From assembly GCA_002794465.1 (NCBI GenBank), contig MTSL01000128.1, positions 20,790-41,527 on the forward strand: a stretch of 20,738 nucleotides of DNA, read 5' to 3'. This document shows, in pieces, positions 4,356 to 20,686 of this stretch (its first letter is position 1; each line of letters starts with the position of its first letter). The notes under the pieces were generated by a model that worked only from the letters and a program-made list of their open reading frames with translations, was not told where the DNA came from and ran no database searches. This stretch comes from Paramicrosporidium saccamoebae KSL3. Its lineage: Eukaryota > Fungi > Cryptomycota. The position numbers and the translations under genes are program-made.

Positions 4356-6158
4356 CTATCTGCTAGCTTTTTTGAGTGACAGGACTGAAAGCTCGTTCGC
4401 CAGCTCATCCACCGGCTCATCCACCAGCTCATCCACGGAATCGCTGCTTAGTAAAGACATGGCGGTGGGCATTTGCGTCTTAAACTTAATCCTAGAGCCC
4501 CTTCCAAATCGGATCTGGCAGTACCGGTCAGTCATTACGCTCAGCATCCAGTTATATTCAGAGTATGACCAGGGTTCAGTGCTTTCATCAATCAGTGTTT
4601 CCTGTAGAGGAATACCAAGGAAAAATAGCATTACCGTTCTGACTGCAGTAGCCGCGCTCCATATGTCCGCCTCCACTGCGTTTGGGATACGCCACGTGAC
4701 AACGTCCTCTCCTTGGCAGGGATCTATGCGGGGGTGATAGAGGGATTGGTGGTAAATGTCTGCTACCACTTGGCATTCGACACATTCAATCGTGGCGGGA
4801 AGGTCGAGTCTGACACGATGAAGGATAGTGGCCAGGAATTGTGGATCGCAGTACTTTCCAAAGTTTATCAGTGGTGCAATCAAATGGGGAACAAAGGGAC
4901 AGTCCGCAACGGTGAGGATTATATCCAATATTCGATAGGTATTGTACAACTGGAGAGTCTCAAAGAGTTCACCGGGAGAACCAAACAGTGACAGCAAATG
5001 TTTGGCAACCAAAAGTTTGCGATGATTATATTCTGGATGATTATGGAAGGATGTGAGAGCGCAGAGGAAATCAAAGACCTGCACAGTTCCAATCCGAGAC
5101 AGCTGCAGACTTTCCATGGCACCGGTTGAATACTGCAGGGATCGATGAAACATGCCGAGCACGCGCAGTCCGTCGCCTAGAAGCGCCCATGCTGCCACAA
5201 CTTGCTTCCGCATGGTCGACACCTGTTGAATCAGAGCAAGATCTTCCTCTTCAAACCTATGGTAAAGGACACCCCATTGGTCTAGCACGATTTTGGGGAA
5301 ATATTCGAGCATCACCTGCATGTACTGGTAAAAGGAGCCGGCAACGTGCCAATCACCGCTCGTGTACAGGTCGATTTCAAAGAGGTAGATTTTGATCAGT
5401 GCGCGTTGAACAAATCCAAGCTTTTCGCCCCCACTCAAGGTCGAGTTAATCTTTTTTGCCAACTCCCGAAAGATGCGCAAGTTGCCAGTGTTTTCCAGGG
5501 AATAGAGGGCCCAATAGTAGAGAATATTTCGAGGGATCACGAGCTTAAAGGTCTGAAACAGCGCCAACTGGAACTTGATGTTGAAGCGGGAGTAATCAAT
5601 TACGGGGAGGACGATTAGGGCCGGTCTGCGAATTCGACGCAGGAGATGCTCCAACAGCGGTTGCACATGGCTACGCATTCTCCGATAGTAATTAGGCTCG
5701 CCCTTTTTAGCAGCGCCTGTCTTGAGCAGCAGAGGGAATTTATCAAAGGGTAAGCCACAACAACGATGCCTTGGATATCCTTCACATAGGCGTTCACTAA
5801 AGTATTGTGTGCACTTGAAGATGCGTAGGACCCGGAACACTTTTGGTTCTGATGGGATCGGTATACACAGTTGACTCGCCAAAGCCTCGAGATTTGGCAA
5901 AGAGGTTGCGGAGATTAGCTCAGAATGCTCTTCCAAAAGATCCAAATAATCCAATCGGGCAGAAATTTCCTCACCCACAGCAAGGGGGGCCGTTACGCGA
6001 AGCACAATCGATGATAATCGGAGAGGACGGGTGCTCTGATATTCCAATGTCTCTGGAGCGCTACTCGGCTGATCGCTGTTACTGCCTGCGCCAAATCGTG
6101 CCAAGAAAAGTAGCACCAGAATGAACACCATGTCCAAATCAACAATGTTTAAAGCCAT
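4356..6158 (-). CDS. Uncharacterised secreted protein, 591-600 aa, divergent family A member (A1)
   Basis: Intact 600-codon ORF. Hydrophobic N-terminus MVFILVLLFLARFGAGS from the second ATG at 6131. Ordered motif matches to A3/A4: YWA; GDW..F..Y-x8-P; FL..P-x3-HR; VRTVMLFFLGIP. Confidence 0.8.
   Translation of the reverse strand: MALNIVDLDMVFILVLLFLARFGAGSNSDQPSSAPETLEYQSTRPLRLSSIVLRVTAPLAVGEEISARLDYLDLLEEHSELISATSLPNLEALASQLCIPIPSEPKVFRVLRIFKCTQYFSERLCEGYPRHRCCGLPFDKFPLLLKTGAAKKGEPNYYRRMRSHVQPLLEHLLRRIRRPALIVLPVIDYSRFNIKFQLALFQTFKLVIPRNILYYWALYSLENTGNLRIFRELAKKINSTLSGGEKLGFVQRALIKIYLFEIDLYTSGDWHVAGSFYQYMQVMLEYFPKIVLDQWGVLYHRFEEEDLALIQQVSTMRKQVVAAWALLGDGLRVLGMFHRSLQYSTGAMESLQLSRIGTVQVFDFLCALTSFHNHPEYNHRKLLVAKHLLSLFGSPGELFETLQLYNTYRILDIILTVADCPFVPHLIAPLINFGKYCDPQFLATILHRVRLDLPATIECVECQVVADIYHQSLYHPRIDPCQGEDVVTWRIPNAVEADIWSAATAVRTVMLFFLGIPLQETLIDESTEPWSYSEYNWMLSVMTDRYCQIRFGRGSRIKFKTQMPTAMSLLSSDSVDELVDEPVDELANELSVLSLKKASR
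4401..4436 (-). repeat. 12-bp coding tandem repeat x3 (VDEL-VDEP-VDEL)
   Basis: + strand cagctcatccac cggctcatccac cagctcatccac near the C-terminus of A1. Confidence 0.9.
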
Positions 6159-6470: not shown

Positions 6471-7927
6471 CTAAAAGGTGGACCACGCTAGAAATCGGCA
6501 ATAACTCTTGGTGTACATGATATGGTTCAGTTGCCATTCCTGCATTACCATGTTTAGGGTTGTAATGTGCTTCTGGAGCTCAAATGACGATTTGGAGAGC
6601 GCATCACAGTAGCTGGAATCCAAGATGACAAACGGTTGTTGATAGACAATTATAGAAAAGACTATGAGATGAAAGACTTCTCCAAGAATGAATTCATCGA
6701 CCCAATTGCCTGGTTTGATCACTCGAATGCTTTTGTCGCTAAGAATGCTGAATTGGAAATGACGAGAGACCAGATCGTCGAGTCTCTCACAAAGCTGAGA
6801 GTACGTCAGGTGGTGGTAGTGGCCGGGTTGAAGCATAATGTCGTCACCAAAGGACGGCAGCATGTACCAACGTCGATAAAAATTAAACGCCAAGTTAGGC
6901 CCATCTCAAGTTGCAGAGAGGTGGGATAGAGACTTTTAGTGATCCCCTTTTCCCTCAGTAAAACCTCATCATAGCCAATGTCGACGGTACTAAAGAGCAA
7001 TCGCTTGTCATTCACGTCCAGATTGGAAAGGGCGGAATCATAGGCAAATAAGATAATTTCACTATGGGCCACAGTGGCTAGCGAACGAGTCTGCTGAGCG
7101 AGCACCGGTAAGAGACCATCTAGACTACATTTCCGTAACCAAAACCGCAAGATGAGGAGAGCGTTTGTGTCGTCGGTCACAGTAAAGAAGGGAATGGGAA
7201 AGAGGTCACATGTCAATTCGGTTTGTGGACAGTTTGCTAATGCGGCAAGGAGTGAGCTGATGGGAGATTCGTGGCGCCTGGGACAGAGCACGTCCAGGAG
7301 AACGCTGGCTCCCCTCATAGCATCCACAGAGCGAAAGAGGGACTCGATGGGAGCAACAGAGATAGCTTTGCTGATTCGGTAATGTATCCTGGACACTGAT
7401 TCGAATGCACACTGGTGAGTGAAGATTCGTAAAATGTTGACCCCGTCCCAGAGGTCGTCGCTGTCAATAAGACTGTCGGGGATATTCTCGCACCAGTTTG
7501 GATATCTCTGGACATTGGTCATCAATACTCGCCATTCTTCAACACTCCCATTTTCTGGCGTCTGGGAAATGGCCATAGGCCATCTCCGCTGCATAACCAA
7601 ATGTCTTGCCTCCTGATACTTGCTGTGATCGAGACAGCCAGGACTGAGGAGGACCTGACGATCATACTCTGACAGTGACTCTGCCATCTCCACCATCAAA
7701 TGAATGTCCTCGAGGGTGTAGAGACGACAGGACCATTCGTAATAGCCTCGGAGGTTCACGGCGGGATGGGAGAGGAGACGCAGTAAGTTGTATAAATTAC
7801 GGGGCTTTACCACGATGCTGTCAAACACTCCTTCCGTTGTCTTGTGATCCACAAACTGAGGGGAGGAGGGATAACGGATGAAAAACGATGATGCACCCGT
7901 CACCCAACACCAAGCTGTCAATTTCAT
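6471..7927 (-). CDS. Uncharacterised, possibly secreted protein (A2), modelled as join(7927..6934, 6904..6471), 475 aa; alternatively a frameshifted gene
   Basis: Two overlapping ORFs (373 aa and 140 aa) in different frames. Removing the 29-nt GTCTCT...CTTGAG at 6905-6933 fuses them. N-terminus MKLTAWCWVTGASS is only a weak signal peptide. C-terminal P-x25-PF-x-I-x3-S-Y-x-D matches A3. Confidence 0.6.
6905..6933 (-). other. Tentative 29-nt intron (GTC donor, GAG acceptor)
   Basis: Only short GT..AG interval found that removes the blocking TGA and restores the frame. Length fits the other introns, but both ends are atypical. Confidence 0.4.
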
Positions 7928-8251: not shown

Positions 8252-8284
8252 TCTCACTGTTCTCAAATACCCGACTAATCAATC
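8252..8284. repeat. Dispersed 33-bp intergenic element, copy 1 (28/33 identical to 10561-10593)
   Basis: tctcactgttctcaaatacccgactaatcaatc versus tctcactgtcctcaaatgcccagataatcaatc. Confidence 0.75.
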
Positions 8285-8363
8285 CTCTGCCTCTACGTCA
8301 AATACCTAACTAATCAATCTGCTACGTCACATGCCCAACTAATCAATCCTCTGCCTCTACGTC
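8265..8363. repeat. Imperfect tandem repeat x3 (35/29/35 bp), core ACTAATCAATC...CTACGTCA
   Basis: aaatacccgactaatcaatcctctgcctctacgtc / aaatacctaactaatcaatctgctacgtc / acatgcccaactaatcaatcctctgcctctacgtc. Confidence 0.85.
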
Positions 8364-8414
8364 ACAATAGAATCTCTGATGACTCTGCCAGTAGTTTTGT
8401 ACACACTCGTACCA

Positions 8415-10194
8415 TTAGTAAAAAGTGGAAAAACGAGTAGAATAGTAATTGGCAACGGCAGGGTTTTGAGAGAAACAATGCACTGTGCCAAAGTCGGTGC
8501 CCACAAAGAGAGTGGAATCGTCGGTGGAGACGGAAATACAGTTGACTTGATGACCAATGGATATCTCCTGGACGGGCCGGAGATGATTGAGACTGTGGAT
8601 TTTGAGCATCCCATCCATGCCGCCTGTGACGAGACGACCATCGCCCAGCCAATGCACTCCCATGAGAGAATCGGTGGGAGTGGCAACACTATGAGAGAAA
8701 TGCAGCATGGGGCGTTGGACGTAGCGCGTGTCATAAACAAAGACGGAATTGTCGCTCATCTCGCCACATGCAATGTATGTGCCACAATTACTAAACCGCA
8801 GAGAATCCATGTCCATCTGGTTGGTGAGGACAGTGTGAATGAGCGAATGACTCTTTGGATCAACAAGATAAAACGCGCCGGTGCCAAACATGTCGTCTAT
8901 GACGCCACCAGTGCCAACGGCAACCATTGTGGAGCTTTGGTCCATGGTGGAAAGACCTTTGGTGGATCGGAAAAGGACCTGTTTGCATCCCTTTGTCGCG
9001 TCATATCGGTATAACAGGCCACCTGCCGACTCTGCTCGATATCCCACGAGTGCCAAAATAGCGTCTTCATTAAAGGCGGCATAATCAACCGAATTACACC
9101 ACCGCCGCTCTGACCCGGGAATCAACTGTACAGACTTTAACTGCGGCGACAGGGCATCGGCGCTTTCTGGATCATCACATCCAATCAGATGAATACGCCT
9201 AATCTATGAAATAGAAACTACAATGTTACCCGTCTTGTGAACCTCCCACGAGGAGGGAACGGTCGCTTTTAAGAGCGAGATTGTTAATGGGAGAAGGGCC
9301 CGTTCTGATTTCAGCAGTAGATAAGGCGCTCTTTGCCTCCCAAAATTTGACATTTCCGTCATATCCTGACGACATGAAGCAGTTGGTGCGATTGTCGTAT
9401 ATAGTCGATGTACATGTTTTTCTAATCTCTCCACAATCAATATACAATCATGAGAGTACTTTCGCCCTGTGGGTCTGTCTGGGAGTGTGCATCGAGTAAC
9501 CAACAACACACCGCGGAGGGGTCAAAGCCCAGCAGCAACACTTCGCCGGGCCGGTTGTATGTGGAATCCATCTGTGCACAAGCACCCGCCATGCACATCA
9601 TCCCGTCAATGGAGTTACGGTCATCCACTGCCAGTGATGTAAGGGGACCCGAAGCGTCCTTACACACAAACACTGGATAGTACGTCTTTGGTTCTGCATC
9701 CATCCTCCCAAATAGCTGCTGTTCCCGGAAATGATCGTATTTGGATTGTGACCTGGGAGGTGCGGCTGCTTTGCGTTGACGGGGTGGCTGCATGCAGAGT
9801 CGGGTGGGTCGTGCAAAGAATAGCTTCTTTGCACTGGTTGGGTCTCCCAGCAGCTCCTTCACGTCTTGGCTGTTCCGTCCCGGAAACAGACGTGTCGTCC
9901 GTGCATCCGTCGTCGCAACATCCAATTCACGAATCGCATTATAATACGTCTCTTCTTTCTCTGTCAATGGCGAATGTATCACTAAAATCAGAACTGTTTA
10001 AAGTATACGGGTGTCCTCTTCCAAAAATGCGGTATCGTGGGCGGTCGAGGCCAGTGCCTCCAATCGACTATTTGAACAGTACGGCCGTCGCTGACTAGCA
10101 TGTCGTGTGAGAACCAACTGCAATTCTTCCCGGTATGCCGATATCTAAAATTACGACTGAACCGGTGCATTACAATGGGGTCGGACGCCCTCAT
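8415..10194 (-). CDS. WD40 DCAF-type protein, probable Raf1/Dos1 (Rik1-associated factor)-like; join(10194..10174, 10144..10009, 9981..9460, 9428..9230, 9198..8415), 553 aa
   Basis: Four 27-31 nt introns fuse the track fragments into one 1662-nt frame. The junction at 9199-9229 creates the WD element GGSQDG|RIHL. Motifs RRPY, LIHSPLTEKE, LFPGR, SGPLTSL, AGACAQMDSTYNRPGEVLL, SSGYDGNVKFW, YDTR and VTGGMDG resemble fungal Raf1-family DCAFs as recalled from memory. The WD40 fold is secure; the Raf1 orthology is not. Confidence 0.75.
9199..9229 (-). other. 31-nt spliceosomal intron, phase 2 (GTAACA...GATTAG)
   Basis: Removes an in-frame TAA and yields LLVGGSQDG-RIHLIG. Confidence 0.85.
9429..9459 (-). 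other. 31-nt intron, phase 1 (GTACTC...GTGGAG), GAG acceptor
   Basis: Of three nearby AGs, only this one restores the frame with the GTA donor, giving DPQGE-KIRKTCTSTIYD. Confidence 0.65.
9982..10008 (-). other. 27-nt intron, phase 1 (GTATAC...CTGATTTTAG)
   Basis: CTGAT branch-like motif and an in-frame TAA inside; joins ...FLEEDT-LIHSPLTE. Confidence 0.8.
10145..10173 (-). other. 29-nt intron, phase 0 (GTAATG...GTAATTTTAG)
   Basis: Connects a 7-codon first exon MRASDPI to an exon that otherwise has no ATG. Confidence 0.7.
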
Positions 10195-10276: not shown

Positions 10277-10413
10277 GGGAAAGTATCGCGTATTGGGAAA
10301 TATCACGTAACGGGAAGTGTAGCGTAATGGAAAGTGCCACGTAACGGGAAATTTCGCGTAATGGGAAATGTCGCGTAATGGGAAACGTCACTTAACGGAA
10401 AATGTCACGTGGT
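10277..10413. repeat. 17-bp tandem array x8, consensus GGGAAATGTCRCGTAAY, upstream of the Raf1-like gene
   Basis: gggaaagtatcgcgtatt / gggaaatatcacgtaac / gggaagtgtagcgtaat / ggaaagtgccacgtaac / gggaaatttcgcgtaat / gggaaatgtcgcgtaat / gggaaacgtcacttaac / ggaaaatgtcacgtggt. Confidence 0.9.
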
Positions 10414-10653: not shown

Positions 10654-12484
10654 TTAACGGGCGGGTTCTGACTGTTTTTCACGTTGAGCTTTACTATCGA
10701 TCCAAAAACTTAAAAAACCCCGTGCCTCTCTTAGGGTCATTTGCTCAGTCTCGTCACTATCGTTAAAGGAAACGGTCGATATTGCAAAGGGGATGCCAAA
10801 AAATAAGTAGGCGATGGATCGCAGAACCTCCATTGCATCTCTAGGGGTCAGTTCGAAGAATAGTGAGGGAAAGAGTATATGGACTGGCAATTTTATCTTG
10901 TGGTGCTTGTGTTTGTGGTGCATGTAGGTAATCATAAAGAACTTGTCGTCTGGGGCTTCTAGGCTCAGCAATCGTCCCCATTCACTTGCGGCCAAGATTC
11001 CATGGTATCGCTTTATGACAAGGCAGAAAATTTCAGCACTGTTGATGGATTCTTCAAAGGCAGTGATGAGCGCCAGTGGGTTAGGACATGTGGATATGCT
11101 CAAATGCAACGAAAGTAACAGGCTGAGACGGCAAATTGCCAAGTATGGGAGCATTTTGTCCACTTGAGTTTTTGAAATGGAAAAGTACATTTCTGCAATT
11201 CGTCGGTGTCCGCAACTTGGAGTCTGGCCATCCTGCCAGCCAGAAACCTCAAGGAAGAGCTCCACACTGGTGGAAAAATGACGAAAAACGGCATGATCTG
11301 AGAAAATTTGTTCATCAATCGAAGCACCCGGCTTCCCATTTAGTAAATTTTGCAAAAATGGAAAAAATACCATAATGCTATTGGCAAATGGTGTGCCGCT
11401 GAGGTTCCCAAAACGTTCAGCAAAAAGTTGCGGAGAGATGGCGTAAAGAGTTTTGACATAGGTGAGAAAGTTCTTATCGTAGTGACGCCAGTCGCCATCT
11501 CCTTCCACAGAGAGTTCGGCGACAAGATCCCACAAATCGGGCATCCATTCTTCCCCAGGGCAATCCCGATTCACCAATTCCTGAACAGTAAGTTTGAATA
11601 GGGCGTATTTATCCAAGTCCTGAGCGGTGGGATTCAATAGGGAGTGCTCGTTCAATTCCAAAACATCTGTAATGGCTCTCTGTGCCCACTCGCTTACAAG
11701 TTTATCAGAGAGCTTCTCAATGTTCGGCACGAGTAGCAAATATGCTTCATCTATGGGTGGTGGATTGTGTATAGCCATGTATTCAAAAAGCTCATCATCC
11801 AGAGAAGAGGCAAAGTGGGCATCAAATAAAAGTCGCTCATACGCTGGCTTCACTGCCTTGGTGAGCGACCTTGCCATTCTGAGCCATTTAAAATCGTTAC
11901 AAGAGGGGATCTGACTAGCAGGGAGCAGCTGATACAGCATGACATTGCAATATTCTTCAGAAGTTTCATGACTAAAAGTGGTAGTAAATAATTCAGTAAA
12001 TAATCTCGCATCTTCTACCGAGAGGGTCCTGCAGAGACCCGACCAGTCCTGATAAAAGGCTTCCAAGGCTTCATAGACCTCGTCATCATCAAGAGGTCTT
12101 ACGCATTGGTGTAGCTTAGAGTACATTAAAGAACGATTCTCCGGTGAATCGCGCGTGAACGAAACTTGGACCGGCTGATGACCGACTATGACAGTGCGCA
12201 TCTATACGAGTTAGCGCGGCTGTCTTAATTACAGAAAGGGGTAGATAAACAACGTTATCTTTCTCTCCATGAGGAACAAGACATTTTAATGGGTGCAGTT
12301 CATTAGAGTTGACCGAAATGTAGAGGGCTCCAGGCATATTGACTCCGATAGTGTGCTTGACATTGGCATACAGTGCTTCTGGAACACTTGTGCACAATTT
12401 TTCGTGTACCGCCAGGCTGAATGTCGATGTAATTTTCGCACTCGACACTAGCGCTATCAAGGCACAAAGCATGGTGGGCAGCAT
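10654..12484 (-). CDS. Uncharacterised secreted protein, family A (A3); join(12484..12233, 12201..10654), 599 aa
   Basis: Signal peptide MLPTMLCALIALVSSA. A 31-nt phase-0 intron joins the 122-aa and 515-aa track ORFs. Collinear paralog of 12855-14663. Confidence 0.85.
12202..12232 (-). other. 31-nt intron, phase 0 (GTAATT...GCTAACTCGTATAG)
   Basis: Canonical CTAAC branch site; same codon position as the intron in paralog A4. Confidence 0.9.
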
Positions 12485-12854: not shown

Positions 12855-14663
12855 TTATTGTTTCTCGCTAAACGTCAGGGTGCATTTACTGCTGGCTTGA
12901 CCCTCTAACCAAAAATCTAACAAGTATGCCAGATCTCGGGGGTCCATTTGGTCATCTTGATCAATTCCAGTAATATGGATGGCAGATTTGGAGAAAGGAA
13001 CATTAAGAAGAAGAAAGGCTATCGATCTCAGGATACCAATAACATTGTTGGATGGTAGCTCAAATATTGTTAGGGGAATGACGAGTGAGAAGGGAGACTC
13101 TGCCGTGCGATCCTTGTGTTGGTCGTACAGGTTGATGATAATGGTGAAAAACATGTCCTTTAGGCGTGTCGAGTACAGCATCTTTTCCCAGTCATCTGAG
13201 GAGAGTGTCTCGTTGCATCTCTTTAGGATAAAACAGAGACTCCCTGCCCCGCGAATAGCTTGTTGGAATGATGACACAAGCTCTAGCCGGCTCATGGGCG
13301 GACTAATACTTAGAATAAGTGAAAGCAGATGGTTAAGTCGCTCTTTTGCCGCGTAATTTAATAATCCGTGCTTGAAACGCTTCGCAACGACGGTGGATAT
13401 TTCTGCAATCAGTCTGTGCCCGGTACTTGGAGCTTGGCCATCCTGCCAACCGGAGATTTGAAGGAAAAAGTCCAAACTCTGGAAAAAGTGGCATCTGGAA
13501 TTTCGGTTCTTGATTGTTGCAAGCGGGCGCGTCGTCCGACCCTCTAGCCGCTCTTGGAAAATTGGAAAAAGCAAGGTGATGCAACGTGCAAATGTTTGGC
13601 CCTCCTTAGGGCTGTGTTTTCCATCAAAGAGTTGTGGAGAGATGTTATAAAGAATCTTGATGTAGGTGAGAAAGTGTCGGTTGTCCCAACGCCAGTCGTC
13701 CAGAGTTGAAACTGACAATGAGGTGACCTCGGTCCAGATCTGAGGCTGCCAATTTTTACAATTTCGCTTCACCAGTTCATTGACAGCGAATTTAAAAAAA
13801 TCGTATGCATCCGTGTTTGGAGATGGCGTGATGGTATCGATTGCCCATGCAGCTACAGTGTCGCAGGAGAGCTTGTGAATATTTGGCTTGAATAAATGAT
13901 ATAAATCATTAAAAGTAATTGTCTCCTTTTTCAACATGAGCTGAAACGAGGCGTCATCCAGAGAACCGGCAAAGCGATCGTCATACACAAGTCGGTCATA
14001 TGCTGGCTCTAGGTCGACTATATTCATCCTGTCGGCGCTGAGGAGCAAAAATTCCTCAACTGAAGGGACTGGCATCCCAGGAACCAGTTGATACAAGAAA
14101 AGTCTAAAATATTTCTTGAGAGGATGCTTACACAAAGCGGTGAATGTTTTGATAAACGTCTCCTTGTCATGTTCAGAGAGAACCCGGATAAGACTTGACC
14201 AATCTCGGTAAAACTCTTCAAATAAAGGCACTGCTGTCTCCAATTTTGAAATGCCCGCAAAGCGAAAGCATATTTTGGCGTTCATTATATCATAGTTGTA
14301 CGGCGAATTACGAGTAAACACAACACTGACCGATTGGATCTCGTCCATCTCGTAAAATATCTACAGGGTCAATATGGCAGAATTTGTTACAGATTGAGGC
14401 ATAAAGATAACATTTTCTGCTTCCTCATGGGCACAAAGCTTTTGTACTAGATAGAGGCGACCAGAATTGACCGAGATGTATAGCCCTCCGGGCACTCGAA
14501 GGCCTATGCTTTTCTTAATATCGGCATACAGGCGACCAGGCACACTCACACAGGTTTGTTTGCATGAGGCCAGGTTGAACTCTGAAACACTGGTTGAGCC
14601 CGATCCAAGCGATACAAAAACGAGCAACACGAACACTAGTCTGAAAAACTTTGACGTAAGCAT
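12855..14663 (-). CDS. Uncharacterised secreted protein, family A (A4); join(14663..14391, 14360..12855), 592 aa (alternative ATG at 14693)
   Basis: Signal peptide MLTSKFFRLVFVLLVFVSLGSGS. A 30-nt phase-0 intron removes an in-frame TAG. Aligns with A3 throughout (FTRxSP, FYxDWS, LYQL, FLTY.K.LY.ISPQLF, SGWQDGQxPSxGHR, LRSIAxL). Confidence 0.85.
14361..14390 (-). other. 30-nt intron, phase 0 (GTAACA...TTGACCCTGTAG)
   Basis: After splicing, A3 and A4 align without gaps across the junction (PLS|MRTVIVGHQPVQVSFTRDSP vs PQS|IFYEMDEIQSVSVVFTRNSP). Confidence 0.9.
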
Positions 14664-14909: not shown

Positions 14910-17514
14910 TTATGTATATTGGAAACACGAAAACGACATGCTGCTATACTTGTCGGTCTGGCGGACAATCTGATCTACGAGCTTCTTGGTCTCGTCTGGG
15001 CCGGGCTGATCCTGGCATCCGCCTTCCAAGGTTGCATTGATGGCGGTAAATAGATCCAAGGCCTCTTGATCCATAATTGTTATCAATTTGTTTTGGACTA
15101 GTGTAACTTCGGTTCGGAGCTGAAGATAGCCGCCGGCCCCAAATTCTCGGATCATCCGAACGCAGCGGAGGAATTCCTGGAAAATGTCCATCACCAACAT
15201 TGACATTAGGCTCCGGAGGATCGAGGAAGAGACGTCGTATATTTGGGTTTGGATCGCCACGAGCTCGAGAAGGAGCGTCTGGATGTATGGACGAAGGGTT
15301 TGAGGATGACGCACATCCATCCAGTCAAAGCCGCTATTGATGGTGCCAGTTCGGACCAGAGAAATCAGGCGGTTCCTCTTTTCGTCAAGGAACCGCTGTT
15401 TGACAGCATCCTCGATGCGGTCCAAGGTGGAGATGACAGCTTGCCTTGGCTCCTCGCCAACTCTGCCAAGAGTATTAGAGTGTGCCTCAAATAGATGGGG
15501 GATGGCCACCTGTCGCAAATACAAAATGTTGGTCATGACCGTCAGCAGCTTGTAGGAGACGCTCAGATCAACGAGTCCAACATTTTCCTTTTGCACATCG
15601 ACAGCAGCCACAATGCTATCCGGGTCGTTCGCATCTTTGGCCTCCATGACGAGATCCCTCAGCGAATTGAGGAATGCGCAAATGGCGTCAGAGAGTCTCT
15701 TGTCAATACCCTTTACTGGGGGCTGTGCTGTTCCGCCGATGGCATCTTGCAAAGCACAGAGTATAGCAGAGGATCCATCGATCAGAGAGATTAAAAGAGT
15801 CTCGAACCCCTTGACGAGTACTGTCGAAAAGTCAAATCCCTCACCGCTGGATTGCCACGTCTCAAAGGTGGGAAGTAGGGCACAGTCTTCATCTGCAGAG
15901 TCCCAAATTGACTTTATAAATATTGACACGGACTGCTCCACGGCCAGTTGGGTCGCTGCGACTATATTGGAAGGTGCTTTGCAGTCAATGGTGGAGAGGA
16001 GCATTTCACATAGCTGGCCCACCGCTTTGGTGGCATAATGCATGGTAACAATTGAGCTCTCCTGAATGTCATTATGTGCAATAATGTCGGGCGAGAGAGC
16101 TTGCTGGATCAGGGAGGGGAACAGTTGGGCAAAGTCATTTGCATATTCTTGAATGCCCTGTTCGTATCCAGCAATTTCCTGCGTCTTGCGGCTCTTGTCA
16201 CGTACAAACCTCCCACTGAGGAGAGCGTTGAGAAATTTTCCAAAATCCAAATAAAATTTCGTGTAGAGATCAGTGATGGTGTAGAAGAAGGAGGCACGAA
16301 TCTTCCAGCATTGTACAATGTCTACATGAAGCATGCCCATACGGTGGCCCTGTCGACGCTGCACCATGGATAGCAGGATCCGAGGAACCGCCTCCGTATC
16401 GATATCAGCAGGGACGCGAGAAATTTCCTCAATGTTTCTCGCGAGAGCCGTCCGACATTGCTCAAAAATATTGTCTTTGCGATGGTGGAAAAAGGTCTTG
16501 ACTGGATCTGGATGTGCATCCAGATCGATCAAAAAATCAATCAGCTTGGAATGGACTTTGTATGTAAACACGGAATTTGACAGCTTGCAATTCAAGTCTG
16601 CCCGCAGCCTTGTCAGTGTCTTGTCCACATGGCCCGCCCAAGTCTTGTGAAGAAGCGACTTGAGGGTGTGGTTTGTGGCATCTTGCATCATAGTCTTTGC
16701 CTTTCTGTAATCGAAAACGGCCGTTTGGTATTCTCCCACTTTCATGGACTGCTCCAGACGGTAACCCAGAGAAAAGATGAATGAGTATTGGCTAAATAGT
16801 TCTAGCTTGCGACGGATCTTTAGCTCTTGCTCTCGACGAACCATCAAGGTGCCATACACATCTTCAGCCCGCTGGTATGCAACCGAGGCTGCCTCGATGG
16901 CCTTTCTCATTCCATGATCCTGGTCGGTGAGACGACGCTGTTGCATGTTCTTAAAGACGAGTTCGGTGGAATTTTTGGCGTTTACAAAGCGCTCAAAGTT
17001 TTGCTTTACCAGATTTTTAAGGGACTCGTTTCTTTGATAGCTGGCGCTTTCGAGATTGTGTCGGCCTCGAACCAGGCTGTCGAAATCAGTGTCGCCGTGG
17101 ATTTCCTTGAGAAAGGAGCGAGGGTCAAAGTTGGCATTTGTTACTACAATGGAAACACTTGGGACATCCAGCTGCGACACGGATTCATCGCCGGTCTCTG
17201 TAATTGGCGCACTTTTTGACAGCAAAACTTGACGGATGAATGCTGGGTCTTTAATATCGAGCGGGTCAGAATCGTCCCTGAGGAGTTGTCGAGCAGAATC
17301 AAGACTGGCTAGACTTGACATTATTTGCTCAGTAGATGCCTCTCCCTTGATTGCTGACTTTGAAGGCTGAATGCTAATTGACGATACCCCGCCATCCCGC
17401 CATTCTGTGGGTGTTAGATTGTCCAGTCCATAGAATTCGAGCACTATTTGTTAGAACGTCTCCTAAACCAATACCATCATTTTGTTCTTCTACTGTCCAG
17501 TTGTCAATTGTCAT
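14910..17514 (-). CDS. SEC5: Exocyst complex component Sec5/EXOC2; join(17514..17475, 17443..14910), 857 aa
   Basis: FDPRSFLKEIHGDTDFDSLVRGRHNLESA...SLKNLVKQNFERFVNAKNS; F..FIFSL...L...GEYQTAVFDYRKAK; C-terminal LRPYIQTLLLELVAI...FGAGGYLQLRTEV. The spliced N-terminus EEQNDVLEFYGLDNLTPTEW resembles fungal Sec5. Confidence 0.92.
17444..17474 (-). other. 31-nt intron, phase 1 (GTATTG...TCTAACAAATAG)
   Basis: CTAAC branch site; supplies an ATG-initiated first exon MTIDNWTVEEQND to an ORF that otherwise starts at GTG. Confidence 0.9.
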
Positions 17515-17518
17515 GAGC

Positions 17519-17566
17519 GGGGTGGGGGTGGGGGTTGGGGTCGAGGTGAGGGTGAGGGTGGGAGTG
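17519..17566 (+). repeat. G-rich 6-bp repeat (GGGGTG/AGGGTG) x8 immediately upstream of the SEC5 ATG; G-quadruplex-capable
   Basis: ggggtg ggggtg ggggtt ggggtc gaggtg agggtg agggtg ggagtg; four G4-5 runs with 1-2 nt loops. Confidence 0.75.
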
Positions 17567-17720: not shown

Positions 17721-18551
17721 TCATTGGAAACTACCGCTCTGTTGGGACTGTTGGAAGCCACCATTACTCTGTTGGGAGCCACCATTGCTCTGCTGGGAGC
17801 CGCCATTGCTCTGTTGGGAGCCACCATTGCTCTGTTGAAAACTCCCCTGGCTTTGTTGGACGCTCCCCCCGCTCTGTTGGAAACTTCCTCCGCTTTGTTG
17901 GAAACTTCCTCCGCTTTGCTGGAAACTTCCCCCACTTTGTTGGACACTTCCCCCACTTTGTTGCGTTATCCTCTGCGTCTGTTCCCCGCTACACTGAGTA
18001 TACATTTTCGATGCCTTGTCAACCTGATCGATCAGTCTTGCATATAACTCGATATCAAAATGACAGAATCGGCTCTTTTGAACCAGAACATTGGCAAGTA
18101 ACTCCATTGCTGTCGTAAAGCCCATAGTACACGTCGAATCACCTTCTAACGTTGATGATTTCAGCACCAAGGCACGTAGATTCGATAAATGTTCAGGAAG
18201 TGCATGCTGTGAGCAGATAGATTTGCATTCCAGAAGATTAGAGCGCATGTCGCGGTCAAGACGGCTTAGGCAGGTATAGAGATCACCAGAACAATGCCAC
18301 CAACTGGTCCTGCCCATTGTGGTTTGAATTTCTTGTTGAACCTTTTCGCAGCTGCCTCGTTGCATAACTGTGCATTTAATCTCATGTGTGGCATTGAGTG
18401 GACGCGAGCCAAGCGATTGCAAAGAAGCTGCAATATCAGGGGACTGTTGGGGGGGTATTGCTGGTCCCAGCGACTGTTGAATAGGTGCTGTCTGCCCGCT
18501 AATCGTACACAAGTAGGCCGCAGCTATAATGACAAATTCAGACAAGATCAT
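17721..18551 (-). CDS. Secreted Cys-patterned protein, family B (B1), 276 aa, with a C-terminal QQSGGSF/QQSNGGS heptad-repeat tail
   Basis: ATG at 18551 (the track start at 18602 is a GTG). Signal peptide MILSEFVIIAAAYLCTISG. Core WHCSGDLYTC...C-x21-C-x23-C is shared with B3. Confidence 0.85.
   Translation of the reverse strand: MILSEFVIIAAAYLCTISGQTAPIQQSLGPAIPPQQSPDIAASLQSLGSRPLNATHEIKCTVMQRGSCEKVQQEIQTTMGRTSWWHCSGDLYTCLSRLDRDMRSNLLECKSICSQHALPEHLSNLRALVLKSSTLEGDSTCTMGFTTAMELLANVLVQKSRFCHFDIELYARLIDQVDKASKMYTQCSGEQTQRITQQSGGSVQQSGGSFQQSGGSFQQSGGSFQQSGGSVQQSQGSFQQSNGGSQQSNGGSQQSNGGSQQSNGGFQQSQQSGSFQ
17724..17963 (-). repeat. 21-bp coding tandem repeat x10 plus partial units (QQSGGS[VF] block, then QQSNGG[SF] block)
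   Basis: CAACAAAGTGGGGGAAGTGTC-type units followed by CAACAGAGCAATGGTGGCTCC-type units. Confidence 0.95.
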
Positions 18552-18692
18552 TATATGGCCCCCTCTTTCATTCAGTGTCCTCTTCAACCGGACATTGAAC
18601 ACTTGATACTAGTAATGCTCTGCACCAATCAAACAGTCTAGTTCTGTGGTATTAAATGAACCAATCAAAGTGGCCAATTGTGGTATATCATT

Positions 18693-19622
18693 TTATTCAG
18701 ACATGATAATATTGCGGTTCCGATCACAATCGGGGCAGTTTGTGTCCATTCCGTTTAGCGGCCTTCCATCAGGTCCAGCCGATCCCATGAATGGATTAGC
18801 GGGCTGATATGACGGAGGGGAATAGGGCCATTTAGGTGGTAGGGGTCGCGTATTGGCGCCATGTCTTCTTGAGAAGGGGTAACGATAGCGTGGGTGTCTT
18901 CTCAACGGTCTGCTGAATCCGTCCCCAATGCGATCGGTAGGAGCAGGAGGAGTGGGTACATTATTGCCGTACTTGCTGGGATATCCGAAGCGATTTCTAA
19001 GCACATCTACTTGAACAAAGCCACACATGACCTTGTTTACAAGTAGCTTTACACTCATCCGAATCACTTTCATTAAGAGAATCCAATCCAGTTGGCAATA
19101 TTGTGCTTTGCGGAGGAGTTCGCGGGTTCTCGTGACCATTGTGTCGAGAAATGTCCCCAGGACAGGGTGTTTTTTAACCTCTTCTGATGGAGCGCTACCT
19201 AGTTTACCAAGCAACGAATGCACATATTGGGGTAATGAATGAATCTGAAACGTTGATTTGTTGCATCTACTCCTTCTCAGCGTATCCTCAATCCTGGTCA
19301 TGATGGTCATTAGACCAGTGTAGACGTCATCTGGGGACAGAGAATTATCACAAACCATTAATAAATTGGGATCCAATTTTTTGGGATTGAGAATTGGCAT
19401 TTCATTCTTCTGTTCTTCGTTGACCACCCAACTCTGTTCAAGTGCGTTTAATTGAAATTGCGGGCGATAGCGGGGGAGCAATGGCTCTTGGGGATACTGT
19501 TGTCCATATGGTGGATATGATGACTGTACACGTCGTCTCGAGATAGGTTCAACATAACCCCAATATGGCATCTGTTGACACACTACACTCCCGAAAATTA
19601 CTAACAGAGGTAATGTCCGCAT
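18693..19622 (-). CDS. Secreted protein, family B (B2), 309 aa; Y/P/Q-rich N-arm, helical Cys core, R/P/Y-rich tail with CPDC
   Basis: Signal peptide MRTLPLLVIFGSVVC. MTRIEDTLRRSRCNKS aligns with B3 MTRQVVENLRSTQCNNTS. LLRKAQYCQLD-x20-C matches the C-x23-C of B1 and B3. Confidence 0.8.
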   Translation of the reverse strand: MRTLPLLVIFGSVVCQQMPYWGYVEPISRRRVQSSYPPYGQQYPQEPLLPRYRPQFQLNALEQSWVVNEEQKNEMPILNPKKLDPNLLMVCDNSLSPDDVYTGLMTIMTRIEDTLRRSRCNKSTFQIHSLPQYVHSLLGKLGSAPSEEVKKHPVLGTFLDTMVTRTRELLRKAQYCQLDWILLMKVIRMSVKLLVNKVMCGFVQVDVLRNRFGYPSKYGNNVPTPPAPTDRIGDGFSRPLRRHPRYRYPFSRRHGANTRPLPPKWPYSPPSYQPANPFMGSAGPDGRPLNGMDTNCPDCDRNRNIIMSE

Positions 19623-19759
19623 AGCTATCCGGCAATATTCACTGTAAACTCACCGATGTGTATTAGTGGGAATATGTATATGAATTACAGGGTGCTACAC
19701 ATTTCGAACGGAACGCATCCATTGGTCTCCCCTCTAACAGCTAGTGATTGGTCTAAAGT

Positions 19760-19910
19760 TGTGATTTCAAGGGGGTTAACCGTAATTTCAAAGGGTGACT
19801 CGTGATCTCAAGGGGTGACTCGTAATTTCAAGGGGCGACTCGTAATCTAACAGGATAGCTCGTGATTTAAAAGAATAACTAGTGATTTGAAATGGTAATT
19901 CGTGGTTAAC
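19760..19910. repeat. 20-bp intergenic tandem array x ~7, consensus CGTRATTTCAAGGGGTGACT
   Basis: cgtaatttcaaagggtgact / cgtgatctcaaggggtgact / cgtaatttcaaggggcgact / cgtaatctaacaggatagct / cgtgatttaaaagaataact / agtgatttgaaatggtaatt, decaying outward. Confidence 0.9.
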
Positions 19911-19926
19911 ATGTTTATTGAGCACC

Positions 19927-20586
19927 CTAGACACGGACATTACCCGACTTTGGCCATAGACCCGATGGAATAGCCGTAGGTGGAGGGGGTTGGGTAGAAG
20001 CGGGCTGGGAACCATTTGTAGTTGCCGATGCGCCCGTGCCATCGGGGGCTTCGGCGCCATTGGAGGTCGCCAATGCGCCAGTGCCACCTTGCATTGATCC
20101 GAGTAATGAGCTGAGAGTGTCACCTGGAGTGGTTGGCTTAGATCCGCTCTTTGCGCACTGTAGCTCTGCTCTGAATAGCTGTTGTGCCATCTCGAATAAG
20201 GTAAAAAGTCCTACATAGTCAACTTGGCATTTCTGGGATTTCTGCAGCACAATATTGGCCGAATACTCCATCTCCTCAGTCCATTTGATAGGACAAGCCT
20301 CTGCAGATTTTGGTTTCCGAGATAAGGAATCGTAAAGTGTCTTTCTCAAATCGTTACTATACTTTTGATCACAAGGGGCTAGACAACTGGTATTGTTGCA
20401 TTGAGTGGAACGGAGATTCTCAACGACCTGTCGAGTCATGTTATTGTAGCACCCAATAGAATCTGATTGGCATTTCCACAACTTGGAAGTGTCTAGTTGA
20501 AATGACGCATTTGGATTATCGCACAGATTGGTAATTGGTGCAGCTGCATAGATTACGCTTGCTCCGGTTATTAGAACCCACCACAT
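19927..20586 (-). CDS. Secreted Cys-rich protein, family B (B3), 219 aa, with a G/S/T/A/P-rich tail
   Basis: Signal peptide MWWVLITGASVIYA. Nine Cys within residues 22-144 and four N-x-S/T sequons (N26, N49, N64, N65). Motifs WKCQSDSIGC and C-x21-C-x23-C with MExxANxxxQKSxxCxxD. Confidence 0.87.
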   Translation of the reverse strand: MWWVLITGASVIYAAAPITNLCDNPNASFQLDTSKLWKCQSDSIGCYNNMTRQVVENLRSTQCNNTSCLAPCDQKYSNDLRKTLYDSLSRKPKSAEACPIKWTEEMEYSANIVLQKSQKCQVDYVGLFTLFEMAQQLFRAELQCAKSGSKPTTPGDTLSSLLGSMQGGTGALATSNGAEAPDGTGASATTNGSQPASTQPPPPTAIPSGLWPKSGNVRV

Positions 20587-20686
20587 TATCGAGTGCCCTG
20601 TCTGATGATGGACCTTATCTTGGCGGCATCAATATGAGACTTGTTACAAGTGAAATTGACCAATCATGGCCGTGTAGCGAAGAGAT

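Follow-up and report, generated by a model that had tools for sequence, protein, structure and literature searches.

Three adjacent genes in a 20,738-nt stretch of the Paramicrosporidium saccamoebae KSL3 genome (contig MTSL01000128.1, positions 20,790 to 41,527, hereafter the window) very probably encode one undescribed protein family. The genes, termed B1, B2, and B3, are all located on the minus strand. Their products are characterized by signal-like N-termini, cores modelled as four helices, and arms predicted to be disordered. Moreover, each gene has its own orthologs, the gene order is kept elsewhere, and the cores evolve slowly. The family is narrowly distributed, predicted to be secreted, and undescribed in the literature searched.

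B1 is an open reading frame (ORF) at 17721-18551 and encodes 276 amino acids from an ATG at 18551. This ATG is the most likely start; an upstream GTG at 18602 is less so. B1 is composed of a signal-like N-terminus (18495-18551), a core spanning residues 55-192 with 9 cysteines (17976-18389), and a tail of Q/S/G heptad repeats (17724-17975). A P/Q/A/S linker with a conserved N-A-T-H sequon lies between the N-terminus and the core. The B2 ORF (18693-19622) encodes 309 amino acids. Its signal-like N-terminus (19575-19622) is followed by a Y/P/Q-rich N-terminal extension with a conserved E-x-P-I-L-N-P motif (19401-19574), a core with four of the eight family cysteines (18999-19400), and an R/P-rich tail predicted to be disordered (18696-18998). 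The B2 tail finishes in a module, KWPY...PDG...NG...CPDC..N.N.I, that is conserved in the alignment of B2-type proteins (18696-18833, with CPDC at 18726-18737). B3 (19927-20586) is an ORF of 219 amino acids with a signal-like N-terminus (20542-20586), a four-helix cysteine core of residues 17-150 (20137-20538), and a G/S/T/A/P tail, also predicted to be disordered, that ends in ...NVRV (19930-20136).

The initial annotation of this stretch proposed that the three proteins share a disulfide-patterned core, and every motif that it named is present in the translations of B1, B2, and B3. The W-x-C-x2-D-x3-C motif is WHCSGDLYTC in B1 and WKCQSDSIGC in B3. The C-x21-C-x23-C spacing is formed by C141/C163/C187 in B1 and by C98/C120/C144 in B3, and MExxANxxxQKSxxCxxD is represented by MELLANVLVQKSRFCHFD in B1 and MEYSANIVLQKSQKCQVD in B3. 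B2 retains LLRKAQYCQLD and the C-x23-C spacing (C176/C200). The proposed core is further borne out by pairwise BLASTP (E values of 8e-10 for B1-B3, 7e-6 for B1-B2, and 2e-6 for B2-B3) and by a profile built from the three trio cores and two close B3 relatives. In an exhaustive search of 1.84 billion representative proteins, this profile matched 61 related clusters at a library-wide E<=1e-3, and 38 of these reached E<=1e-10.

Mature B1 and mature B3 possess 9 cysteines each, and eight cysteine columns recur across 60 family cores. In B3 numbering, the near-invariant columns are C39 (60 of 60 cores), C63 (59), and C120 (58). The variable columns are C46 (45 of 60), C144 (42), C68 (37), C98 (33), and C22 (27). 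Over the same 60 cores, C63 and C120 are gained and lost jointly (phi 0.70), as are C46 and C68 (phi 0.73). This is the pattern expected of disulfide partners, and C63/C120 and C46/C68 are the putative pairings. Because nine cysteines leave one over in mature B1 and B3, the odd cysteine is a putative partner for a bond between molecules. Of the eight family cysteines, B2-type cores retain four, and a conserved C-terminal CxxC is added.

With a 56-sequence family alignment as input, AlphaFold2 modelled B3 residues 17-150 as four helices, at a mean predicted local distance difference test (pLDDT) score of 90.1 and a predicted template modelling (pTM) score of 0.84. In the model of full-length B2, core residues 95-205 reach a pLDDT of ~85-94, and both arms fall below 50, which corresponds to predicted disorder. 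The core measures ~125-135 amino acids. The structural homology on which the initial annotation depended is thus upheld by a confident four-helix model shared by B3 and B2. Its description of arms that differ among the three proteins agrees with arm compositions that differ by class, and the arms are predicted to be disordered. When the B3 core was compared with 350,542 PDB chains using Foldseek, the best E value was 1.6 and no TM-score exceeded 0.32. The full-length B2 model gave a best E value of 3.1 against PDB chains, and the viral models of BFVD gave a best E value of 1.3. A search of PDB sequences with the core profile returned 0 matches at E<=10. Judged against PDB and BFVD only, the modelled core is provisionally a new fold.

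Thirty of the 61 clusters were looked up. All lack a functional name, 'hypothetical protein' being the label of two. Nearly all of the 30 are environmental; they derive from Logan read-archive assemblies and from metagenomes of JGI and ENA, along with one other NCBI assembly, GCA_047514055.1. Among 62 members searched at E<=1, Pfam returned no family match, and no family was common to more than two of the 62. B1 and B2 met no Pfam gathering threshold, and B3 had only sub-threshold chance matches. No described Paramicrosporidium secretome or cysteine-rich protein family was found in the literature searched. Reciprocal BLAST and a neighbor-joining tree of the cores separate B2-type, B3-type, and B1-type clades, the last with satellites, from a fourth, distant clade. 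Since each of the three has its own ortholog clade, B1, B2, and B3 are old paralogs and not recent tandem copies. The B3 orthologs include P0002 (72%) and P0003 (62%), and the B1-type orthologs include P0012 and P0018. A word-indexed search with a 60-sequence core alignment yielded 4 proteins, of which P0071 was the sole addition. A metagenome scan with the B2-type alignment yielded one locus, L011, with a divergent singleton B2-like gene. The family may extend beyond close relatives of Paramicrosporidium.

Two of the outlying groups have features of their own. The fourth clade is composed of P0043-45 and P0054-56, and two of its genes form a tandem pair at 8988-9836 and 9962-10768 of L010, a compact eukaryotic contig of 113 kb (ENA ERZ25039546). 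In this pair, one gene has a long Q-rich N-terminal arm, and the other has a C-terminal extension. A divergent B2-like subgroup without the terminal CxxC comprises P0024, P0039, P0046, and P0057. P0046 (L011 1091-2179) and P0024 (L014 9800-10693) are encoded by singletons flanked by VID27 and a pseudouridine synthase gene, in organisms with a GC content of 45-55%.

B1-B3 are predicted to carry signal peptides. The most hydrophobic 11-residue stretch of each protein is at its N-terminus. Elsewhere, a comparably hydrophobic stretch of 19 residues occurs only in B2, where it coincides with a predicted core helix; a membrane anchor is therefore not evident in the three proteins. The hydrophobicity profiles are in line with the signal peptides and lack of an anchor described at the outset, the signal-like N-termini being a prediction. 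Among 75 family sequences that start with Met, 56 have an N-terminal hydrophobic stretch. The C-termini of B1, B2, and B3 have no KDEL/HDEL signal and no hydrophobic tail of the glycosylphosphatidylinositol (GPI) type. Passage through the endoplasmic reticulum (ER) is supported by conserved glycosylation sequons: in 10 of 11 B1-type proteins of full length, N-x-T-H immediately precedes the first core cysteine, and six of nine B3-type proteins have C-x-N-x-T-C. B3 carries 5 N-x-S/T sequons.

The three arms differ in composition and repeats, as had been described. In B1, 21-bp tandem repeats (17748-17963) code for QQSGGSF and QQSNGGS heptads. B2 has a Y/P/Q N-terminal arm and an R/P-rich C-terminal arm with CPDC at its end, and the B3 arm is composed of G/S/T/A/P. 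Calculated with the signal peptide included, B2 has an isoelectric point (pI) of 9.7, with 11.3% Pro overall, 18.8% Pro in the tail, 9.1% Arg, and 4.2% Lys. On the same whole-protein basis, B1 has a pI of 6.5 and 2.5% Lys, and B3 has a pI of 7.4 and 5.5% Lys.

Arms of the same class take several forms in other organisms. The B2-type arm encoded at L007 10934-11899 holds a His/Arg run, RHHRHHRHHHRHHHHHHHH. That of P0041 (646 amino acids) has many GQSWPY(N/S)P repeats, and that of P0033 (555 amino acids) has DYRFPE(D/N) repeats. The core is kept in all three; the CxxC end is present in the L007 protein and P0033 only. In addition, a [VIL]-R-[VITA] motif (NVRV, RLRV, IVRT, WVRT, SIRA) occurs in the last 12 residues of tails that are otherwise unalignable. 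Its carriers are B3 (19930-19965), P0002, P0003, P0006, P0010, P0012, and P0017, which are B3- and B1-types from different organisms. This motif may serve in sorting or processing.

The trio is directly followed by the gene for Sec5, an exocyst subunit (14910-17444, minus strand; Pfam PF15469, E 1e-90). Sec5 is used here as a syntenic anchor, and no functional link is claimed. Three other organisms have the same B3-B2-B1 type order on one strand, and in two of them Sec5 comes immediately after it. In L004, a read-archive contig with a GC content of 59%, B3-B2-B1 is directly followed by Sec5. In L007/L008, from JGI metagenomes with a GC content of 42%, the order is ATG5-B3-B2-B1-Sec5. L005/L006, from GCA_047514055.1 (GC 55%), has the B3-B2-B1 order. 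The window Sec5 is 48% identical to that of L004 and 60% identical to that of L007, and these are clearly different organisms. Partial arrays are found in L009 (GC 32%; a B2-type gene, then a B1/B3-like gene), L012 (GC 37%; a B2-type gene, then a B1-type gene, with Sec5 on the opposite strand at a distance of ~3 kb), and L010 (the fourth-clade tandem). A B3-type and a B2-type protein probably also lie together on a 2587-bp contig, as the same contig is the longest one listed for both. There is approximately one gene per class per sampled organism, and the loci seen contain no lineage-specific expansions. Orthologs for each paralog, together with the kept order, fit a fixed multi-part set.

In the comparison with L007 and L004, the rate at which the cores change is about as low as that of Sec5. 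Measured against the orthologs in these two loci, core identity is 58% and 58% for B2, 47% and 42% for B1, and ~40% and 41% for B3, respectively. Arms of the B1 and B3 types can scarcely be aligned, and some orthologs (the L007 B1 and P0005) have none. In the B2 arm, the middle is variable, and the KWPY..PDG..NG..CxxC..N.N.[VI][IL] end is kept in most B2-type proteins. The conserved cores and B2 termini point to purifying selection in these regions and do not have the look of an arms race.

P. saccamoebae is a rozellid (Rozellomycota), close to the microsporidia-like organism supposed in the initial annotation. It is an intranuclear parasite of Saccamoeba and forms chitinous spores of ~1 um with a polar filament (PMC5701793). 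Hidden Markov model (HMM) searches of its genome found none of the known polar filament proteins, which the authors blamed on fast evolution (eLife 2017, PMC5701793). The genome authors left it open whether the polar filament arose just once (PMC5701793). The organism has a polar filament, yet the HMMs found no filament proteins, and the trio fits that gap. It is narrowly distributed, predicted to be secreted, disulfide-rich, and evolutionarily stable, with an unmatched fold and a layout like that of ptp1-ptp2.

The probabilities attached to the functional readings that follow are judgements and not measurements. An extracellular structural set is the best fit, given the predicted export signals, the putative disulfides, the single gene per class per organism, the slow rate, the class-specific arms predicted to be disordered, and a carrier organism that makes spores with a polar filament. 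Tentatively, and at somewhat less than an even chance, we read the trio as a three-part, disulfide-stabilized structural set of the spore or the invasion apparatus. Within this reading, the polar filament in particular is a doubtful assignment. The trio as polar-filament or extrusion-apparatus proteins of Paramicrosporidium-type rozellids, whether extremely diverged homologs of PTP1/PTP2 or independent analogs, is likewise improbable on present judgement, though it deserves mention.

B1-B3 are predicted to enter the ER, gain intramolecular disulfides and N-glycans, and then be exported. If the trio is such a set, they would act jointly outside the plasma membrane, in the spore wall or the polar filament. 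The helical cores would supply conserved contacts and cross-links, for which the odd ninth cysteine of B1 and B3 and the terminal CxxC of B2 are candidates. The disordered arms would set material or surface properties through Q/S/G repeats, R/P/Y-rich sequence, and S/T/P-rich sequence that is probably glycosylated.

Several observations weigh against the structural-set reading. Conserved order need not mean functional coupling, because Sec5 and other neighbors are also syntenic, and compact, microsporidia-like genomes retain synteny well. Divergent B2-like genes stand alone in other organisms (L011, L014), and the motif shared upstream of the three genes, described below, is not specific to them. 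A shared architecture cannot depend on the B1-type and B3-type arms, since the L007 B1 and P0005 do without them. None of the 62 members has a Pfam match at the threshold given above. Lastly, the 60-sequence core profile was aligned using hhalign to the conserved region of A. algerae PTP2c (PMC10229552 Fig. S1), the sole PTP2 used, and the resulting probability was 0.12% with an E value of 0.48. For this one PTP2, the result accords with the initial statement that the trio has no sequence similarity to polar tube proteins; PTP1 was considered by description only.

The same three subunits could instead be surface-coat or wall-assembly proteins without a part in invasion, such as components of a glycocalyx or adhesive layer or factors for chitin deposition. 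The secretory features, the conserved N-glycan sequons, the S/T/P-rich, mucin-like arms, and the housekeeping-like conservation all suit this role. However, B1-B3 have no GPI-type C-terminus, no membrane anchor, and no carbohydrate-binding domain recognizable by Pfam, and the same data fit the spore-wall version of the structural set equally. We regard a coat or wall-assembly role as unlikely, though it is a serious contender.

Alternatively, the trio may encode secreted effectors directed at the host, which would act in the amoeba nucleus or cytoplasm with the core as a scaffold and the arms, such as the Arg/His-rich arm of B2, binding host factors. In favor of this reading, the carrier is an obligate intracellular, intranuclear parasite, and B1-B3 are small and cysteine-rich, with signal-like N-termini, an unmatched fold, and variable arms predicted to be disordered. 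The arms of B2 are strongly basic, with a His/Arg run in the L007 ortholog. Effectors, however, usually vary in copy number, and here there is about one gene per class per organism with no expansions in the loci seen. Effectors also usually diversify faster, whereas these cores are conserved like Sec5, that of B2 more so, and the core rate argues against fast-evolving effectors. The N- and C-terminal modules of B2 are strongly conserved as well. An effector role is therefore judged to be fairly improbable.

A role in secretory housekeeping, in which ER- or Golgi-resident proteins serve as a cargo receptor, a chaperone, or a thiol-exchange set and the link to Sec5 reflects trafficking, is very unlikely. 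The trio adjoins Sec5 in three organisms and is near Sec5 in a fourth, B2 has a conserved terminal CxxC, and evolution is slow. Nonetheless, B1-B3 have neither a KDEL/HDEL retention signal nor a membrane span. Sixty-one clusters among 1.84 billion representatives is a narrow distribution, unlike that of core trafficking machinery, and the Foldseek searches of PDB linked the fold to no known family, thioredoxin and Erv included. Chance or compositional similarity between ORFs that are not real genes, to which the low-complexity arms lend some color (a full-length B1 search was swamped by Q/S/G repeats, with 8000 candidates and B1 itself alone returned), is refuted by significant core-only similarity, 61 homologous clusters with conserved cysteines, synteny in other organisms, and a confident model from the family alignment.

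The trio is a concrete candidate set for spore or polar-filament proteins. If the polar-filament reading is true, it would be the first molecular handle on whether the rozellid filament and the microsporidian polar tube have a common origin. Even if the filament idea fails, the trio represents a new protein family, probably with a new fold, in three fixed classes in mostly uncultured parasites. The family could be used as a metagenome marker for the organisms that carry it.

The sequences upstream of the three genes share a CCAAT-box motif, TGATTGGT. Two copies at 18624-18667 on the minus strand precede the B1 ATG by 78 and 114 nt, and further copies are at 19745-19752 (upstream of B2) and 20659-20666 (upstream of B3). 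The window contains 5 copies versus 1.1 expected, and four of the five are upstream of trio genes. In seven other loci, GATTGGT lies ~70-130 nt upstream of family orthologs, and in the related loci it also precedes genes unrelated to the family. As an element of trio-specific co-regulation, TGATTGGT was rejected, since the boxes precede six of the 10 other window genes and unrelated genes elsewhere. CCAAT/ATTGG boxes are found 28-165 nt upstream of the ATG in nine of 13 window genes (e.g., 2597-2604), and CCAAT occurs 88 times in the window versus ~40 expected. They also precede unrelated genes in related loci, L007 among them. The CCAAT box looks like a general promoter element of the NF-Y type in these genomes.

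The spacers of the window contain minisatellites. Tandem Repeats Finder identified a 20/40-bp unit in 2-3 copies at 19761-19873, in the B3-B2 spacer, 3' of B3 and 5' of B2. Other spacer minisatellites are at 10277-10410, 8263-8369, 17519-17566, and 2657-2721. Their units include a 17-bp repeat (7.8 copies), a 35-bp repeat (3.2 copies), (GGGGTG)x8, and a TGTAG-type repeat. The sequence CGTAAT is common to the 17-bp and 20-bp units.

Apart from the trio, the window holds a densely packed row of eukaryotic genes with few introns, among them those for a DP transcription factor, a WD40 protein, and Sec5, along with several unknowns. B3 agrees in every residue with the protein encoded on contig MTSL01000128.1 of assembly GCA_002794465.1 (genome accession MTSL00000000). 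Upstream of B3, 152 nt are known, as the window stops at the contig end. A second tandem paralog pair, presumably Family A of the initial annotation, is located at 10654-12201 and 12855-14348 on the minus strand. Its members have 515 and 497 amino acids and no Pfam match; their full-length identity is 37% (E 3e-92). The two other large unknown ORFs, at 4356-6158 and 6806-7927, do not form a paralogous pair. Two public gene models at this locus are probably annotation errors. The model of B2 has 292 amino acids, starts at Met18, and is without the signal-like stretch (window 19572-19622). The model beside B1 has 2795 amino acids and fuses Sec5 with WD40-containing downstream genes (L001 3114-10812).

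PTP1 and PTP2 of microsporidia have signal peptides and many cysteines, require thiol reductants for their extraction (they are soluble with dithiothreitol), and are encoded by adjacent genes in many species. PTP1 has an acidic, Pro-rich sequence that is O-mannosylated and contains repeats and terminal cysteines. In PTP2, which is basic and rich in Lys, 8 cysteines are conserved, and some species have a variable Ser/Gly-repeat extension. The trio resembles them in its signal-like N-termini, cysteine richness, tandem linkage, and occurrence in a parasite that bears a polar filament, and this resemblance is one of arrangement only. The B1 core with its Q/S/G repeats parallels the 8-cysteine region and Ser/Gly repeats of PTP2, and the B2 tail, with 18.8% Pro, parallels the Pro-rich PTP1. 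B2 has a terminal CPDC but is basic (pI 9.7), unlike the acidic PTP1, compared here by description. Unlike PTP2, B1 and B3 have near-neutral pI values and 2.5-5.5% Lys, and B2 is basic but Arg-rich. Moreover, the repeat arm of PTP2 is N-terminal and that of B1 is C-terminal, the cysteine spacings differ, and the trio consists of three paralogs, whereas the PTP1/PTP2 cluster has two genes.

Secreted, compact helical domains with three to four disulfides are known from saposin-like proteins, the 8-Cys nsLTP/2S albumin group of plants, oomycete elicitins, fungal CFEM proteins, and insect odorant-binding proteins. The trio is like these in having a compact, helical, cysteine-clamped core in proteins predicted to be secreted. 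It differs from these families, considered here by name, in that Foldseek gave neither the B3 core nor B2 a PDB match with E below 1. The nsLTP motif has CC and CxC, and the cysteine pattern of the trio is without both. The trio is also like tandem candidate effectors of fungi and oomycetes, which combine a signal peptide (predicted here), a small cysteine-rich core, tandem paralogs, and no known domains. Unlike fast-diversifying, copy-variable effector clusters, it has about one gene per class, a fixed order, and cores that evolve no faster than Sec5. The general kind is familiar; the protein family itself is new.

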